64,000 nt of DNA from Octopus bimaculoides. Lineage: Eukaryota. A program made the position numbers and the translations under genes. Below the pieces are notes generated by a model. The model had not been told where the DNA came from and did not search any database. It saw nothing but the letters and a program-made list of their open reading frames with translations. Positions 27,511 to 64,000 of the stretch are shown here, piece after piece. The stretch covers positions 182,195,697 through 182,259,696 of the forward strand of contig NC_068981.1 in NCBI RefSeq assembly GCF_001194135.2, written 5' to 3'. Each line of letters begins with the position of its first letter. Positions within the stretch are counted from its first letter, which is position 1.

Positions 27511-28178
27511 ACGTTCGGATAGTGCAATAATGTTGCAATAATCTAAAAAGATGATAATCAGATGGAGTAAAGTTAAGAGAGTGGCAGGGGAGGCAAAACT
27601 TCCATATTTGGTGCTGTAATCTTTTCCTGAGTCACTTGCATTATTATGTAAGAGCAACATCCTTTTACAGTTAACCAATGATGGACACATTTTCTGTGAA
27701 TTTCTGTGCAAGTCTTACAGTTCACAACAATACTTTTTTGTATCAGCTATTTCGTTTTTGTGTAACACTTTGTGATAGACAAACAACATTTTTCATATCC
27801 CACCAAACACAAAGCATAATATTTTTTATCATCATCATGTAACGCACGTTTTCCATGCTGGCATGGGTTGGACAACTGTATATTCTTGGTAATATATTCT
27901 GTTAATTATTAGTGCTTAGACATTCATTTAATTGTGATTAGCCTTTTTACAGAGTAAAGAGGCTTCATTTGTTGGTGTTTTTTTTTAATGTTATTTTTCA
28001 TGTAAGAATAGGAAAAAGGTATTGCAAATGAGAAATGACAATTGTTTCATTTGAGTATCGAAAAAAAAAATTTTTTTAAATTTAATGTTTTGTATAAAAT
28101 TTCATCTCTATGTTGCTAATAATAATGTTTTTGTTTTTTTTTCTTTCTTTTTTAATTACAGAGTTGCTCACTGACACC

Positions 28179-28356
28179 ATGTCAGCTCCACCACCACCTC
28201 CACCGCCATGTGCGCCCCCGCCTATGAAGTTGGGTTCCAAAAAACAAGCCAGTAATACTTCCAAGCCTGTTGATAGAAATGTTTTCCTCGGAGAGATTCA
28301 TAAAGGTACTAGACTCCGAAAAGCAGTTACCAATGACCGTAGTGCACCAGCAGTTG
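28179..28356 (+). CDS. WIPF: WIP/verprolin (WAS/WASL-interacting protein family) polyPro + WH2 exon (exon 28162-28356)
   Basis: MSAPPPPPPPPCAPPP...DRNVFLGEIHKGTRLRKAVTNDRSAPAV carries the WIP-family WH2 signature LKKxVTNDRSAP. Acceptor ttttaattacag|, donor G|GTGAGT (phase 1). The vertebrate paralogue cannot be assigned. Confidence 0.93.
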
Positions 28357-28551
28357 GTGAGTACAAGTTATTTCTTTATGTGTTTGTGTGTATTATTGAA
28401 AAAAATGCATAGAAATGGTTTTTCTGATAATTTTTCCACTTTATAAACATTTAATTATTAAAGTGGCAAAATTATCAGAAAAGCCATTTCTATTCATTTT
28501 TCATTTTTTCAAATATATATTACTGTACCAAAGACTTTCTATTTCTTATTT

Positions 28552-29299: not shown

Positions 29300-29650
29300 A
29301 TTATCACAGCCAACAACTGTGTTACCATCATACATACTCACACTCCCACAAACAACACAACTATCCATTACTTTTGTGTACTCTCATTCTTGCAGTCTAC
29401 ACAACTATATATTTTCATCATATGTTTTTGTATTATCCCAGCTAATAATGACTGTATTACATTATCATTACGAATATTTGCATAATACCAGCCAATACAA
29501 GTGTGTCACTGTCTTGTGTACTTACATTATTCCAGCCGACACAGCTGTGTATTATTTCAACTGGTACACATATTATCTCCCTCAACAAAATTATGTGTTA
29601 CTCTCATGTATCTGTACTCAAATAAAACAAGCTCGCACAACTGTGGTATG
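29300..29650. repeat. Highly degenerate tandem array, unit about 45-50 bp
   Basis: Motif cagccracacaactgtgt recurs at roughly 45-50 bp spacing about eight times. Confidence 0.55.
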
Positions 29651-29902
29651 CAAATTAAGTTGCTCCAACTCTCTGAAACTACCTGATTTGCCATGTATAT
29701 AAACTGATTGGCTATTTGTTTCTCTGGGATTGATTCAAGAAGCGTAGACACCTGATGAGAATCCGAAAAAGTTTCAAAATCATTTAAGGATATTCATCAT
29801 TTTTGCAATCTATGGAGAATTAGTTTAATTTGCCATGTTTTTATGTCTATTGTGTAGCTTATGTATATTATATCATATTTTGATGCCGTGTGGATTGATA
29901 TT

Positions 29903-32402: not shown

Positions 32403-32513
32403 GAAATAAAAAGGCTTCACCGGCTTCAAAATACAATACAATAGGTGTACATACACATCGACAACAACATCAAGTGAAGGATAACGCATTATGGAGAAGA
32501 GGAAGCCAAGATG
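32403..32513 (+). CDS. WIPF: WIP-like gene cassette exon 2 (111 nt, phase 1/1): GNKKASPASKYNTIGVHTHRQQHQVKDNALWRRGSQD
   Basis: Acceptor cttaaccttatttttttctatag|, open in the phase left by exon 1, donor GATG|GTAGTT. Confidence 0.75.
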
Positions 32514-41226: not shown

Positions 41227-41910
41227 TTCGTCGGCTATCGGCGTTTTCCTTTCCTGTGATGACATCTTCCAAGTCCAGCTTTGAAATCTCACCAAATATA
41301 CAATATTCTTCTCAAACATCTTCAGTGCCTCAGCATTCTCCTAACCAATTTGTAGCCCACTTAAAAACAACAAAAGCAGAATCATCATCATCATCGTCTC
41401 ATTATGCATCACCAGTGTCTCATCAGAATAAGAGCTCTGTTATTATTAACAAAACTGAAAAGACTCAGCAGATGGAATCAGAAATTATCACTACTCCATC
41501 TTCTAGAACTAATCAAGATACCTCTAATGATATAAGTAATACTAGCTTTACTAGCTCTGATAATTATCTGTCTCCCTATCAGTATTCTAAACCATATTCT
41601 TCTCAGAGTGTTGAGAATAATGTCAATGTTCCCTCAACAGTACCAGTACCACCATTGATTGAGCAGATCCAATCCAATTTCAAAAAGCTAAAACATAGTT
41701 CTCCTAAAATGGCCAAAGCTAGGACTAGCAGTGGAAATAAATCCAACTTGAAAATTATTCAAGGTTCTCCTTACCATACATCATCGAAAGCTGCCAAAAC
41801 ACTAGAACAGCAGCTTCATTCTCTGCGCAAGACCTCAATCAACCGTAAGACTACATCTTTCGAACCTTCGGCACCAGTATCAGAATGGAGACAGAAGTTG
41901 AAAGTGGATG
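41227..41910 (+). CDS. WIPF: WIP-like gene cassette exon 4 (684 nt, phase 1/1), S/T-rich with WH2-like motifs
   Basis: Acceptor ttaccaatttcag|, 228 open codons (VRRLSAFSFP...EWRQKLKVD), donor GATG|GTATAC. Confidence 0.8.
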
Positions 41911-44096: not shown

Positions 44097-44903
44097 CTCC
44101 CAGTTTCCATAGATTTTCTGCTTCTCGTTTGAATATTCGCCAGCCTGGAACTCCCCGGCATCGATCTGCAGCTATGTCTCATTTTAGACCAGTAGCTACA
44201 ACAAACACTCCGAACTCTTACAATTTGACTAAACCTTCTTCAGATATCGTTGCAACTAACTCCACTAATGTTTTAACTGTTGCTGCTAAATTTTCTAACT
44301 TTGACCAACAGCAAGCATATCCAAAAGAGACTAAAAAAGAATGTATCATCTATGAAAAACCTCAACTGCCCTCCCAAAAGTATAAAAGTCCAGTAACTAG
44401 TATTTATGAATCTGCAGCTATTTTTGAACAACCCCAAAATTCAGCATACAAACTACCTAAACAGTTTTCACAACCATCAACAGTATCACAAACAACTTCT
44501 GAGGAAAAACCAGCAGAATTTCTGGAAGTTACTCTGAAATCAACAAAGTTTTCGACTTTATTTTATGGTGCTAAAAAAGATCCCAAAAAGGATTTCACAC
44601 CGTTTGGAAATTACAACCGATCACCTTACGGGAACCCGTCTTTATTTAAGAGTAATAATAATAATCTAAACCCTTATGTAAGATCTGTTTCCTACCACGG
44701 GCCACTTTCAGAAGCTTCCTACTCAAAGTCTCCACAAAACTCAGGCAGTTATTTCCGACCAATTGGTTGTTCATTCTTCCAGCCTTCATTTATGTCCAAT
44801 TCTGAGAGAGGATATTCTGAAAATACCTATCAAATGTCAGCTTCAGCACCATCACTGGTTCAAAATCGTATCAAATGGGCACTGAACATGTCTTCATCTG
44901 ATG
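44097..44903 (+). CDS. WIPF: WIP-like gene cassette exon 5 (807 nt, phase 1/1), S/P/N-rich
   Basis: Acceptor tttaaaattttcag|, 269 open codons (APSFHRFS...VQNRIKWALNMSSSD), donor GATG|GTATTG. Confidence 0.8.
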
Positions 44904-45289
44904 GTATTGTTCCTGTTGTATTCCTTCTCCTTATGCACATAGTTTCCTTCTGCTATACAGCTCATTTCTACCCACTGTTTTGCATACAATCTCAAGGTTT
45001 AGTGGCAAAGCTTCAAACTCTGGCACCAAAAGAGAAAAAAAAAACACAAAAAAGATCACATAAACAAACCCAAGGTTGAATTCATGTTTTCACTCATAAA
45101 AAGTAATTTATAATTAATTATATCATTATTGAGGTTGATAACAACGTTGGAGTATCATTATTAAAAGCACACCAAATAAAAATTGAGGTTATTTAATTGC
45201 ATTCTTTTCTAATCTGAGCAAAAATCATGTTTAAATCAACTTACCCTTGAGTTGATTAAATAATTACTTATAACATAGTAAAATACTCG

Positions 45290-51081: not shown

Positions 51082-51171
51082 CTAATCAAAGTACAGATAC
51101 AAAAGATGATACAGTCCGATCTTTGGTCAAAGACCGTATCAACTCTTGGGGAGGACATTATAAAGATGAGG
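51082..51171 (+). CDS. WIPF: WIP-like gene cassette exon 6 (90 nt, phase 1/1): ANQSTDTKDDTVRSLVKDRINSWGGHYKDE
   Basis: Acceptor catttcttcattgcag|, donor GAGG|GTATAA; ends in a motif similar to the end of exon 5. Confidence 0.75.
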
Positions 51172-58761: not shown

Positions 58762-58980
58762 GAGCTGGCAGAATCATTAGCATGCCAGATAAATTACTTT
58801 GCAGCATTTCTTCCAACTTTGTTCTGAGTTCAAATTCTGCTGAGGTTGATTTTGCCTTTCATCCTTTTGTGGGGGTGAATAAAATAAGTATCACTCAAGA
58901 ACTGGAGTTGATGAAATCGTCTCTTCTCTTTCCCCCAAATTTTGTGCCTTGTGCATATAGTAGAAAGGATTATTATGGAT
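58762..58980 (+). mobile_element. SINE-C copy, preceded by (CCT)n at 58711-58740
   Basis: gagctggcagaatcattagc...gaaaggattatt. Confidence 0.8.
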
Positions 58981-59499
58981 GCTTTGGATCTTCAGTTGGA
59001 GATCATCTAAATTGGATCTAAATGGTGAGGTCAATATTCCTGGAAATAAAGAGAAGCAAAGCCAGTCAACTGGACTTCAGGTTTCTAGAAACATTCTTGG
59101 AAACATCCTGCTCATTCATGTTAGTGGATAGTTGGAATAGCTGACAGGTTAAGCCTAGATTTTCCAAATGTACTGAGGTGGACTTAGACCCAGTACTTTA
59201 GGCCATCCAAATCATATTTAGAAACAGTTTTTGTTTTATTAGTGGACAAGAACACTGTTAACATACACAGATTCCAAGTTATTGGGCTTTACAGACCAAT
59301 TTAGATAAAACTCAAATGAATGTCCAGTTTCTGGAAACTAAACGTTTTCTTCCAGACACAGAAAACTTACAGGACCTGATTATTACTATAGATTTTAATT
59401 AACATTAATAATCGCTGTTGTTTAGCCCCAGACCAACTTGATAAAGTAGACCTATGAGCAAAAACATTCCAACTATGACTACCCCATCTGTTTTCCAGG

Positions 59500-60499
59500 T
59501 ACCGTGCCGTAAGGGAAATTTAGCTTCTGTTTCTTGTTGGTCGAACTAATTCACTTTGCAAGCGGTGTTTTCTAGATTAAAAAAAATAATTAAATGTAAA
59601 AGTGAGAAATCTTTTTTTTAAAGAATCGTCATTTCACCCTGAATCGTGTATCAAGTTTCTTGAGATTCTTGTGACAAAACACAATTATATTCAAGTAGTG
59701 AACGTTTTCTTCTTCCCCCACCCTCACCGCCACTAGTTCCTGTTCACATAACCATCCAACTTTTACTTCTACTTCTACGTGTATGTGTGTGTGTATTTAT
59801 CTACCTACTTAGTGAGCGGTGTTATTTCAAGTGGTTATGTATTTTCCGTCCACGCACTGTTGTAATACCGTAATCATGTTTTCATCCTCCTCTTTAACTT
59901 CACAAAACTACTGCCAGCAGTTCATAGTTTGTTTTATGAAAGTATCTCGTGTTAGAGAGAGAGAGAGAGCCAGTCAAGTCAGTCAGTGAAAAAGAGAGAG
60001 AAGCTATTCAAATTATCCAAGCAAGCAATGTTTAGTCTTGCTCCTAGTATTGCTTTCGTTTTCGAAGAAGGAAACTCACTAAGTTAATTAGACAATAAAG
60101 GTGTTCTTTCATTTCTCTTTCTTTCTCTCATTTTTTTTCTTTTTTCTCACTAGCAGTCGCTGTACTTATTTTCCCTCTTCATCATCAGGTTATATGCATC
60201 GCATCTTTTTCATCGTCTGTGCATTACACCATATCTCGCTAGCTTTCAGTCTTTTGTACCTCTCTTTGCTAGTTGTGCACCTTTTTCATCGAATGTGCGC
60301 GCACACACACACCGCAATCTCTCTCCCATATACACGCGGATTTACTCTCAAGACTGCTTGTTACTATTAAATAAGAGACGTGCTTACTATTAAATAAATA
60401 ACACACAATAACAGGAAGCTGACTTCCAACAGTAATAACTTAAAGTTGGCTTATTACCACCGACTATCATTGATCGATACATGTACCCACCTTTCCCAT

Positions 60500-60541
<42 letters not shown>

Positions 60542-62250
60542 TCTTCTACCTTAATGATAGTAGTCGTAGTAGTAGTTTCTTTTACAATATCGTTGATACA
60601 CGCTTACATGCTGCTGCTGTATAATATAAATCGTACTGGACACATGAGCTCAGCTGAGTTACTATCAACACCACCACTATTATAACAAATTAACAACTTG
60701 TCTGCTACTGCTGTCTACCGTCCGTTCGTTTACCCGAAAACTTGAGATCTTCACATAAACACTGCTGGATGAGTGAGTGATAAATTACTTCTATTTCATT
60801 CATTCGTTGTTGATATTTCACCCAACCCCTGGTCGAGCAGGTCTGGGATCACAAGCTTTTCACTCTGTCGCTTCAGACTAAGCGTATCTAGTAGTATCAC
60901 TTATCCGATGTCCTACTGTATTTATTTATTTATTTATTTATTTATTCAGATGGCAGGGTGTGGTTTGAGTGATATTGGTTGTCATTTCTAGCAGATCTAA
61001 CGATCATGTAAATAACCCTTGGTGGTTTATTTTCTGTTCATATTTTTATCATTCTAATCTCCGTATTTTTTTTATTTTGCAGCTCACCCTTTTTGGCGAT
61101 ATCATCTTTTACTTTATAACTACATAACTCTAGATGATCCTCTATGCATGCCTGCATACGTAAATGTATGGATGCATGCATGCATGTAGTATGCATATGT
61201 GCATGGTTTCATACATGTATATTGTATTTATATATGCATCTATGTATGTTCTACGTATGCATGTTTGCATACGTGTATGTGATATGTGTAAACGTATCCG
61301 TGAATGTGTGTACACGAATGTAGTCTATATGTGTACATGCATTTATGTGTATACGCATACATAGATGTGTGTTGCTTTTTAGCTGCAGGTCATCCCCGAT
61401 CAAGTAAACTTATGGCCAAAGATACTCGATTATCCTTGACCGACCTGTTTTTTATTCAGACACACAATACTTTTTACAACATTATCCAACGTGTCTTTTA
61501 TATGTATATATACATTTAAAAAAAATAAAAGGCTGTGATTTGAGAAGATTTAGCTGTTATTTCTATTGTCAAACAGTCTTGTAAAGGCTTCTTTGTTGGT
61601 TTCGTGTATATTGGGTGTGTATATATCTATGTATCTGGGGAGATGTAGAACCCTTTTAACTATATGTGCCGTGTTGTGTTACTCACCGTATCCATAGTTA
61701 TGTGTGTGCGTGCGTGCATATTATGCCGTTATGTATTTGTCTACCAATTTCTACTCGTGTCTGTGTCGTCTTATCTTCAATACCGCCTCTCTTATTCTTT
61801 CAAATGTAAACTATTTCATTTATTTATAGTTCGGCTATTATTACCGTTCCCTTTTCATTTTCTTTTTTTCTCGCAGAAAAGCCATATATTATATTACTAT
61901 ATAATTTAGGCGCGAGCGAACCTCTTAGATTTGGCATAGATAATTTGTCTTTGTGCCCTAACTGTAGAAGTGTTGATGACTACATTCCAGTAGTCGCTCA
62001 CACAATTCCTTAACTCAACCCTAACAATCCTCCACATCCAAGTAACTCATCTATTGTGGTTGATATTATTGTGCATGTGCGTATGTATATATATATATAT
62101 ATATATGGTAATATTTTGACAATTGTGCTATATAAAAATTTTTCACATTGTCAAACTACTGAACCTGCCAGCAACTCTATCTTGAGGTGGCAACTGAATC
62201 TGTTACTAAATTTATGTAAGCATTTATTTTGCTACTACCGCATGTCTCTT
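59500..62250. promoter_or_regulatory. CpG-retaining domain, probable unmethylated promoter region
   Basis: Hand count: about 28 CG in 60001-61000 versus about 2-7 per kb in unique intronic DNA sampled at 14-15, 31-32 and 51-52 kb. Confidence 0.7.
60625..60772 (+). promoter_or_regulatory. Candidate TATA + Inr core promoter and first exon (about 60657-60772) ending ATG-A|GTGAGT
   Basis: TATAAA at 60625-60630, Inr-like TGAGTT with A at 60657 (32 nt later), sole ATG at 60769-60771, consensus donor at 60773. Confidence 0.55.
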
Positions 62251-62341
62251 ATCCCTCCCCTCTATCATACATGTAAATATGTATGTGTGTGTGTGTGTTT
62301 ATATATGTATACACACACACACACAGCAGTCCTTTAAGAGT

Positions 62342-62394
<53 letters not shown>

Positions 62395-63800: not shown

Positions 63801-64000
63801 AGCCTTGTGAGTGGATTTGGTAGACAGAAACTGAAAAGAAGCTGGTCGTATATATATATATATATATATATNNNNNNNNNNNNNNNNNNNNNNNNNNNNN
63901 NNNNTATATATGTGGGTGTGTGTATGTTTGTGTGTCTGTGTTTGCCCTCCCAACATCGCTTGACAACCGATGCTGGTGTGTTTACGCCCCCGTAACTTAG
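63801..64000 (+). mobile_element. SINE-B1, partial, cut by the window end
   Basis: gccttgtgagtggatttggtagacagaaactg, (TA)n hinge with a 33-N gap, tail ccaacatcgcttgacaaccgatgctgg. Confidence 0.85.

Follow-up and report, generated by a model that had tools for sequence, protein, structure and literature searches.

In the genome of Octopus bimaculoides, it is mainly the bodies of a subset of genes that carry methylation, with intergenic DNA and transposons being comparatively unmethylated (PMC9476566, which used WGBS of supra- and sub-oesophageal brain and RRBS of hatchlings). The MP2 class of this species comprises 8972 genes in which the body is methylated but neither the start site nor the promoter is (Macchi et al. 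2022, PMC9476566), and in Nautilus the promoter and first exon are hypomethylated as well (PMC12532940). In vertebrates, intragenic CpG islands are reported as possible starting points of alternative host-gene transcripts or of independent RNAs (PMC2944787; PMC5378174; PMC5927659; PMC8873577). Here, we describe a block of retained CpG dinucleotides at positions 59,440 to 61,990 of a 64,000-nucleotide stretch of O. bimaculoides DNA (assembly GCF_001194135.2, contig NC_068981.1, positions 182,195,697 to 182,259,696 of the forward strand). This whole stretch is referred to as the window. The block lies most likely in an intron of a WIPF-like gene (WIP, an actin regulator) on the plus strand. It belongs to a known kind of element, an intragenic CpG-retaining island, and is an ordinary but plausible promoter. 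Judging from its sequence, we estimate the probability that some transcription starts within this island at roughly 0.55.

The island spans 2551 bp, contains 71 CpGs at a G+C content of 36.6% and is putatively unmethylated in the germline. Its CpG density is 2.78 per 100 bp, compared to 0.72 in the rest of the 64-kb window (a 3.9-fold difference), and the observed/expected ratio (o/e) of CpG amounts to 0.84 versus 0.25. Masking of dinucleotide microsatellites hardly affects these ratios (0.89 in the block versus 0.25 outside). If a frame of 2551 bp is moved along the window, it holds a median of 17 CpGs and a maximum of 72 at start position 59,466 (Poisson P 1e-20), while the best frame clear of the island reaches 42, driven by SINE-like repeats at 56.4–57.0 kb. 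An initial annotation of this DNA had already claimed a several-fold CpG jump against a depleted gene body, and these numbers fully bear it out. The G+C content is nearly equal inside and outside (0.366 and 0.343, respectively) and the GpC o/e is ~1.0 on either side. This makes the contrast a CpG-specific one, as expected from decay driven by methylation. With microsatellites masked, TpG and CpA have an o/e of 1.19 and 1.18 in the block compared to 1.31 and 1.33 outside, meaning that their excess is lower inside. Both edges are sharp. On the left, lone CpGs at 58,918, 59,343 and 59,413 are followed by a dense series from 59,503 onwards; on the right, CpGs are dense up to 61,917 and are then found only at 61,995, 62,080 and 62,239. 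The o/e thus stays well above that of the surroundings over the full 2551 bp, as in a promoter-type unmethylated island. The vertebrate CpG island of Gardiner-Garden and Frommer is reportedly defined by a G+C content of 50% or more, an o/e of 0.6 or more and a length of 200 bp or more. The block exceeds this classical definition in o/e and length and falls short of it in G+C (36.6%).

The identity of the host gene follows from its WH2-coding exon (28,162–28,356, plus strand, ATG at 28,179, donor in phase 1, splice sites read directly). From the ATG to the donor (28,179–28,356), this exon is identical to UniRef entry A0A0L8H5D3_OCTBM. It matches the Pfam WH2 profile with an E-value of 2.5e-9, and among the solved structures of the PDB, chain C of 2A41, the WH2 peptide from human WIP, matches it best. 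The hallmark of the WIP/verprolin (WIPF) family, an N-terminal poly-Pro stretch followed by a WH2 domain ending in KKxVTNDRSAP, is present. A full HMMER search yielded 183 relatives, and those that carry a name are of the WIPF or verprolin type. They include ‘WIPF’ of Sepia (Acanthosepion) pharaonis, ‘WAS/WASL-interacting protein family member 1-like’ of the chiton Liolophura sinensis, a WH2 protein of Lottia gigantea and a full-length WIP-like protein of the bivalve Solemya velum (KAL5007626.1, 444 amino acids). As the acceptor lies 17 nt before the ATG of the WH2 exon, a 5′ untranslated exon is expected further upstream. The second exon (32,403–32,513, plus strand, phase 1-1) is conserved and matches amino acids 61–96 of the S. 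velum protein as well as the S. pharaonis WIPF model. Existing models of the gene are truncated, since both the octopus model A0A0L8H5D3 (98 amino acids) and the S. pharaonis WIPF model (167 amino acids) end by reading into the intron after exon 2, while exon 2 itself is conserved with S. velum. The range of the S. pharaonis WIPF gene is 124 kb.

Further downstream on the plus strand, two large Ser-rich exons are found, neither of which has a Pfam match. The first one (41,227–41,910) is a putative cassette exon with an open frame of 684 nt (228 codons), AG/GT boundaries and phase 1-1. The second one (44,097–44,903; 269 codons, phase 1-1) is conserved in a related Octopus species, with 86% nucleotide identity to Logan contigs L001–L003 (SRR11869394/84/91). 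In this comparison, all indels between 44,030 and 44,990 are exactly 3 nt long, whereas those outside this region measure 7 and 25 nt upstream, 1 nt at 44,993, and then, again in multiples of three, 9, 3 and 6 nt further downstream. Both Ser-rich exons look like lineage-specific insertions into WIP. A putative 90-nt cassette exon named in the initial annotation (51,082–51,171, plus strand, phase 1-1) has two out of three frames open when the sequence is read directly, and has no support from outside the window sequence. Every identified donor and acceptor of the host gene is in phase 1. The earlier claim that all WIP donors upstream of the island share this phase is thus confirmed at 28,356, 32,513, 41,910, 44,903 and 51,171.

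The second actin-binding motif of WIP (GLGGLF), the Pro-rich centre and the C-terminal WASP-binding region were not detected in the window by tblastn and a motif scan. This remaining part of WIP is expected downstream of position 64,000, so that the gene would run past the end of the window. As the remaining part lies outside the window and the intron phases are conserved with the bivalve, the island is most likely located inside the WIP transcription unit. The block at 59.4–62.0 kb is then most likely intronic, in a long intron downstream of exon 2 and the cassettes. The strong CpG depletion (o/e 0.25 over 64 kb), read as a sign of past germline methylation, would in turn place the window inside a methylated transcription unit. 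Weak strand asymmetries fit plus-strand transcription across the window, including the part that lies to the right of the island. In nearly every 4-kb bin, the plus strand has more T than A, and the whole window contains 20 plus-strand versus 38 minus-strand GTRAGT sites and 74 versus 127 AATAAA hexamers. Such asymmetry fits selection or mutation bias along one long plus-strand transcription unit. The peptide LGGLF encoded at 61,018 was considered as a WIP exon and rejected as a chance match, being preceded by a stop and lacking an acceptor. An exact look-up of one window open reading frame (ORF) and of the gene model returned no record among O. bimaculoides contigs and transcripts, and nothing relevant on WIP isoforms from alternative promoters was found in the literature.

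A mechanism that may account for these features starts from a host gene with a methylated body, as is the case for about half of the octopus genes. Methylated CpGs would have decayed to TpG and CpA, bringing the o/e near 0.25. The block would have been shielded from germline methylation for a long time, similar to start sites, and would thereby have kept a near-equilibrium CpG content at an unchanged G+C content. Its most likely role would be that of an internal transcription start region. The simplest product would be a transcript that is spliced into the downstream WIP exons, yielding an isoform that lacks the exon encoding the N-terminal poly-Pro stretch and WH2 domain. Exon 3, beyond the window, would bear the second actin-binding GLGGLF motif. 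Hypomethylation and promoter activity are inferred from the sequence, as are the strand that is transcribed and the exon that serves as splice partner. In particular, a WIP isoform that starts from the island is a tentative proposal, possible but less probable than a transcription start as such.

The initial annotation had drawn this promoter in detail, with a TATAAA box, an initiator (Inr)-like site 32 nt further and a 116-nt first exon that encodes only Met plus one nucleotide. The TATAAA (60,625–60,630) is indeed there, as the sole one on the plus strand of the island. The proposed exon (60,657–60,772, plus strand) indeed contains a single ATG (60,769–60,771), which is directly followed by an A and by the donor GTGAGT (60,773–60,778) in phase 1. 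The Inr-like site is weak, as the sequence at 60,657 (cTGAGTTa) is a poor fit to the YYANWYY consensus, which in a TATA/Inr core promoter follows the TATA box at about 25–31 nt. A TCAGCT at 60,650 comes nearer to this consensus, but the first T of the TATA box would then be located at -27. No downstream promoter element is seen at +28 of the proposed start when the sequence is read directly. The Kozak context of the ATG (tggATGa, T at -3) is poor compared to that of the authentic WH2 start (accATGt). The donor, TGA/GTGAGT (the slash marks the exon boundary), follows the consensus on the intron side only, its exon side being non-consensus. In a rough donor matrix it scores ~1.3 by hand calculation versus 4.9 for the WH2 donor, yet this matrix does not discriminate, as the donors of the conserved exon 2 and of the cassettes score below zero. 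Having only one ATG in 116 nt of such composition is unremarkable (estimated P about 0.4), and a phase-1 match to a WIP acceptor has a prior of 1/3. The phase of the ATG A/GT donor is compatible with downstream WIP, since the upstream donors and the acceptor of S. velum exon 3 are all in phase 1. Overall, the promoter reading is backed by the island itself, its setting in an intron of a WIPF-like gene, the published methylomes and a comparable island in S. velum (see below), whereas the anatomy of TATAAA, Inr and 116-nt exon does not go beyond chance. It is very unlikely that exactly 60,657–60,772 serves as a first exon. In this part of the island, the plus-strand GC skew is strongly negative (down to -0.375) between ~60.0 and ~60.8 kb and returns to ~0 after ~60.9 kb. 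The minimum of the cumulative skew falls near the proposed exon, and the skew is partly due to CT-rich tracts and (CA)n, the latter being a microsatellite inside the island at 60,501–60,540 (plus strand), 85 nt upstream of the TATAAA.

The orthologous locus of S. velum (contig JBHNWI010000647.1) offers a comparison. The introns between its exons 1, 2 and 3 are in phase 1 and agree with those of octopus in position. An island with an o/e of 0.84 lies at the 5′ end of the gene, and a second, internal island of 3.2 kb (27.6–30.8 kb of the analyzed locus sequence) has an o/e of 0.99 at an unchanged G+C content, while the gene body on its two sides has an o/e of 0.46 and 0.37. The internal island lies in the 17.5-kb intron between exons 2 and 3 and ends ~0.95 kb upstream of exon 3. 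The octopus and S. velum islands occupy the same intron, the one after exon 2. Between the two islands, no sequence similarity beyond the control was detected. The S. velum island holds a single phase-1 ATG-donor candidate, the micro-exon ATG AGA T/GTGAGA (29,704–29,710), which has an A at -3 and is preceded by a TATAAT at a distance of about 98 nt, and about one such candidate is expected by chance. With this comparison, an internal WIP promoter becomes more plausible but is not established. A more far-reaching version would be an ancient internal promoter of molluscan WIP, common to a cephalopod and a protobranch bivalve, that produces a WH2-less isoform via a micro first coding exon (Met plus 1–4 nt, phase 1) spliced to the GLGGLF exon; this proposal is distinctly improbable at present.

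A number of observations weigh against a transcription start in the octopus island. First, core-promoter motifs occur in it at background frequency. On the plus strand, the 59 TATAAA sites of the window lead to an expectation of ~2.4 in the island, where one is seen (hence no enrichment), and the 20 GTRAGT sites to an expectation of ~0.8, where again one is seen. For a composite pattern, defined as a TATAAA followed within 300 nt by a GTRAGT donor with an open ATG before it, the two strands of the window together contain ten instances, two of which lie in the island (one per strand) versus ~0.4 expected. Second, donor-like sites accumulate on the opposite strand: 4 of the 16 strongest minus-strand sites of the window (61,686, 59,727, 60,490 and 61,087) fall in the island, where ~0.6 are expected. 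Third, the S. velum parallel has weaknesses of its own. Part of that island is MITE-like, with 38-nt inverted repeats (28,424–28,461 and 29,410–29,447) and related copies at 12.7–13.4 kb. No internal island was found in the chiton, limpet and mayfly orthologues, so that the parallel exists in one out of four other WIP loci, and the predicted S. velum short isoforms (MRS-NIGGG... and MGLGGLF...) are not present in the protein collection, which is a weak test. Fourth, an imperfect 17-nt direct repeat (15/17) brackets the octopus island (59,381–59,397, TATTACTATAGATTTTA; 61,892–61,908, TATTACTATATAATTTA), which could be a target-site duplication or a chance occurrence in AT-rich DNA. Finally, the SINE-like CpG peaks elsewhere in the window are young insertions that still hold their CpGs within a methylated gene body, and by composition alone, long-unmethylated and recently inserted DNA cannot be distinguished.

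Part of this evidence would also suit a promoter that drives a separate transcription unit within the WIP intron. Such a unit could be an unannotated gene, or a non-coding RNA of the antisense or bidirectional type; the initial annotation had left room for a separate gene as well. On the minus strand, a first-exon candidate at 61,681–61,828 combines a TATAAA (61,828–61,823), an ATG at 61,719 and 11 codons with the donor ACG/GTGAGT at 61,686. This donor has the best matrix score in the island (7.1), and the candidate is no worse than the plus-strand exon. The concentration of strong minus-strand donors in the island points in the same direction, as do its C- and T-rich plus strand and GC skew of -0.115. 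Such a donor excess may reflect antisense transcription, but it may also simply mirror the G-richness and CpG content of that strand. Against a separate unit, many minus-strand AATAAA hexamers are located downstream of the minus-strand candidate, and inside the island the asymmetry of AATAAA and donor sites is ambiguous as to direction. A coding product is not apparent either: a six-frame scan of 59,000–62,345 revealed no Pfam domain (no transposase, reverse transcriptase or other), and the concatenated island ORFs of at least 40 amino acids had no match in a set of 5.8 billion proteins. This homologue search is a weak test, as its list of candidates reached 8000, probably the upper limit, and its word index missed known relatives, namely an 85%-identical Octopus ORF (P0004) and human WIP, which were found by full HMMER search and in the PDB. 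Regarding structured RNA, an Rfam scan of the block gave no hit at the gathering score, with sub-threshold hits only to microsatellite-type miRNA families, and ARAGORN found no tRNA in it. Taken together, we regard a separate unit as unlikely.

The island could also be an unmethylated regulatory element that bound factors protect from gene-body methylation and that is not a productive promoter. Examples would be an insulator, an enhancer within the intron, and a silencer or Polycomb target. The CpG evidence fits this explanation equally well, and the lack of core-promoter signals above chance agrees with it. According to one review, many vertebrate intragenic CpG islands are not stable promoters (PMC8873577). 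However, a block of 2.5 kb with a near-equilibrium CpG content and sharp edges is more typical of the protection seen at start sites, and cephalopod methylomes place hypomethylation at start sites and first exons (PMC9476566, PMC12532940). The S. velum island also lies directly upstream of an exon. A non-promoter element is therefore quite unlikely.

Alternatively, the block may be a recent insertion or stem from a transposon, with its CpGs still in place even though it is now methylated like the gene body. There are precedents in the window, since its smaller CpG peaks (16.5–16.85 and 56.6–57.02 kb) are exactly SINE-like insertions, and both the bracketing 17-nt repeat and the MITE-like element in the S. 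velum island would suit such an origin. These SINE-like repeats have many diverged copies in the window, and the peak at 56.6–57.02 kb is a tandem pair of them. The block, in contrast, has no second copy in the 64 kb, no terminal repeats apart from microsatellites and no domain in six frames. It carries none of the interspersed repeat families of the window. Several different microsatellites and short diverged bits of other repeats make it look like old unique DNA. The SINE fragments within it are too short to serve as a clock of CpG retention. Among the marks of a transposable element, the imperfect 17-mer is the only flanking repeat of the block, and three CpGs of the dense series (61,911–61,917) even fall outside the putative target-site duplication. 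A recent insertion is very unlikely on these grounds. An assembly artefact, in which unmethylated DNA from elsewhere was joined into the scaffold, is extremely improbable: N runs in the window (8.6–9.5 kb, about 57.9–58.1 kb and 63,873–63,905) show that the assembly is a draft with gaps, but the island edges coincide with none of these and both lie, not at repeats, more than 1.2 kb inside a single gap-free contig (about 58,130–63,872).

If an internal promoter is active in the island, there would be at least two forms of octopus WIP, with and without the N-terminal WH2 module and the large Ser-rich cassettes, and the coupling of WASP/N-WASP to actin by WIP would be altered. Should the internal promoter be ancient, promoter choice would switch the actin-monomer-binding N-terminus on or off. 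More generally, the block would then exemplify how intragenic CpG-retaining islands of a cephalopod genome can be recognized as unannotated start sites by their sequence alone, which would help in view of the visible truncation of the octopus and cuttlefish models of this gene. At present, the block is an expected kind of feature with a putative function.

Compared to known systems, the block shares with the young SINE-like insertions at 16.5–16.85 and 56.6–57.02 kb a local CpG o/e (about 0.6–1.2 in these insertions) that rises from a depleted background. While these insertions are 0.2–0.4 kb in size, have a raised G+C content and occur in many copies, the block measures 2.55 kb, is single-copy in the window and has no repeat termini. 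As in vertebrate orphan or intragenic CpG islands that act as alternative promoters (Illingworth et al. 2010, PMC2944787; PMC5378174; PMC5927659; PMC8873577), the island would sit in a methylated transcription unit. It differs from them by its G+C content of 37% instead of 50% or more, by its invertebrate genome with mosaic methylation and by being known from sequence. A closer resemblance is found with the hypomethylated start sites of cephalopods (MP2, PMC9476566; Nautilus, PMC12532940), where a methylated body (here CpG-depleted) is broken by an unmethylated region at the kilobase scale (here CpG-retaining). The MP2 regions, from the same species, likewise have no raised G+C content. Those regions are the 5′ ends of annotated genes and their methylation was measured, whereas the octopus block is most likely intronic, lies 31 kb or more beyond the first coding exon and has no annotated start, and its methylation state is deduced from base composition. 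Finally, the WIP-like gene of S. velum (KAL5007626.1) is an orthologue with phase-1 introns after exons 1 and 2, in which an island of similar size (3.2 versus 2.55 kb) with an o/e of ~1 occupies the exon 2–exon 3 intron. Exon 3 follows at 0.95 kb in S. velum and at more than 2 kb, beyond the window, in octopus, and both islands contain a phase-1 candidate for a micro first exon (ATG plus 4 nt in S. velum, ATG plus 1 nt in octopus).

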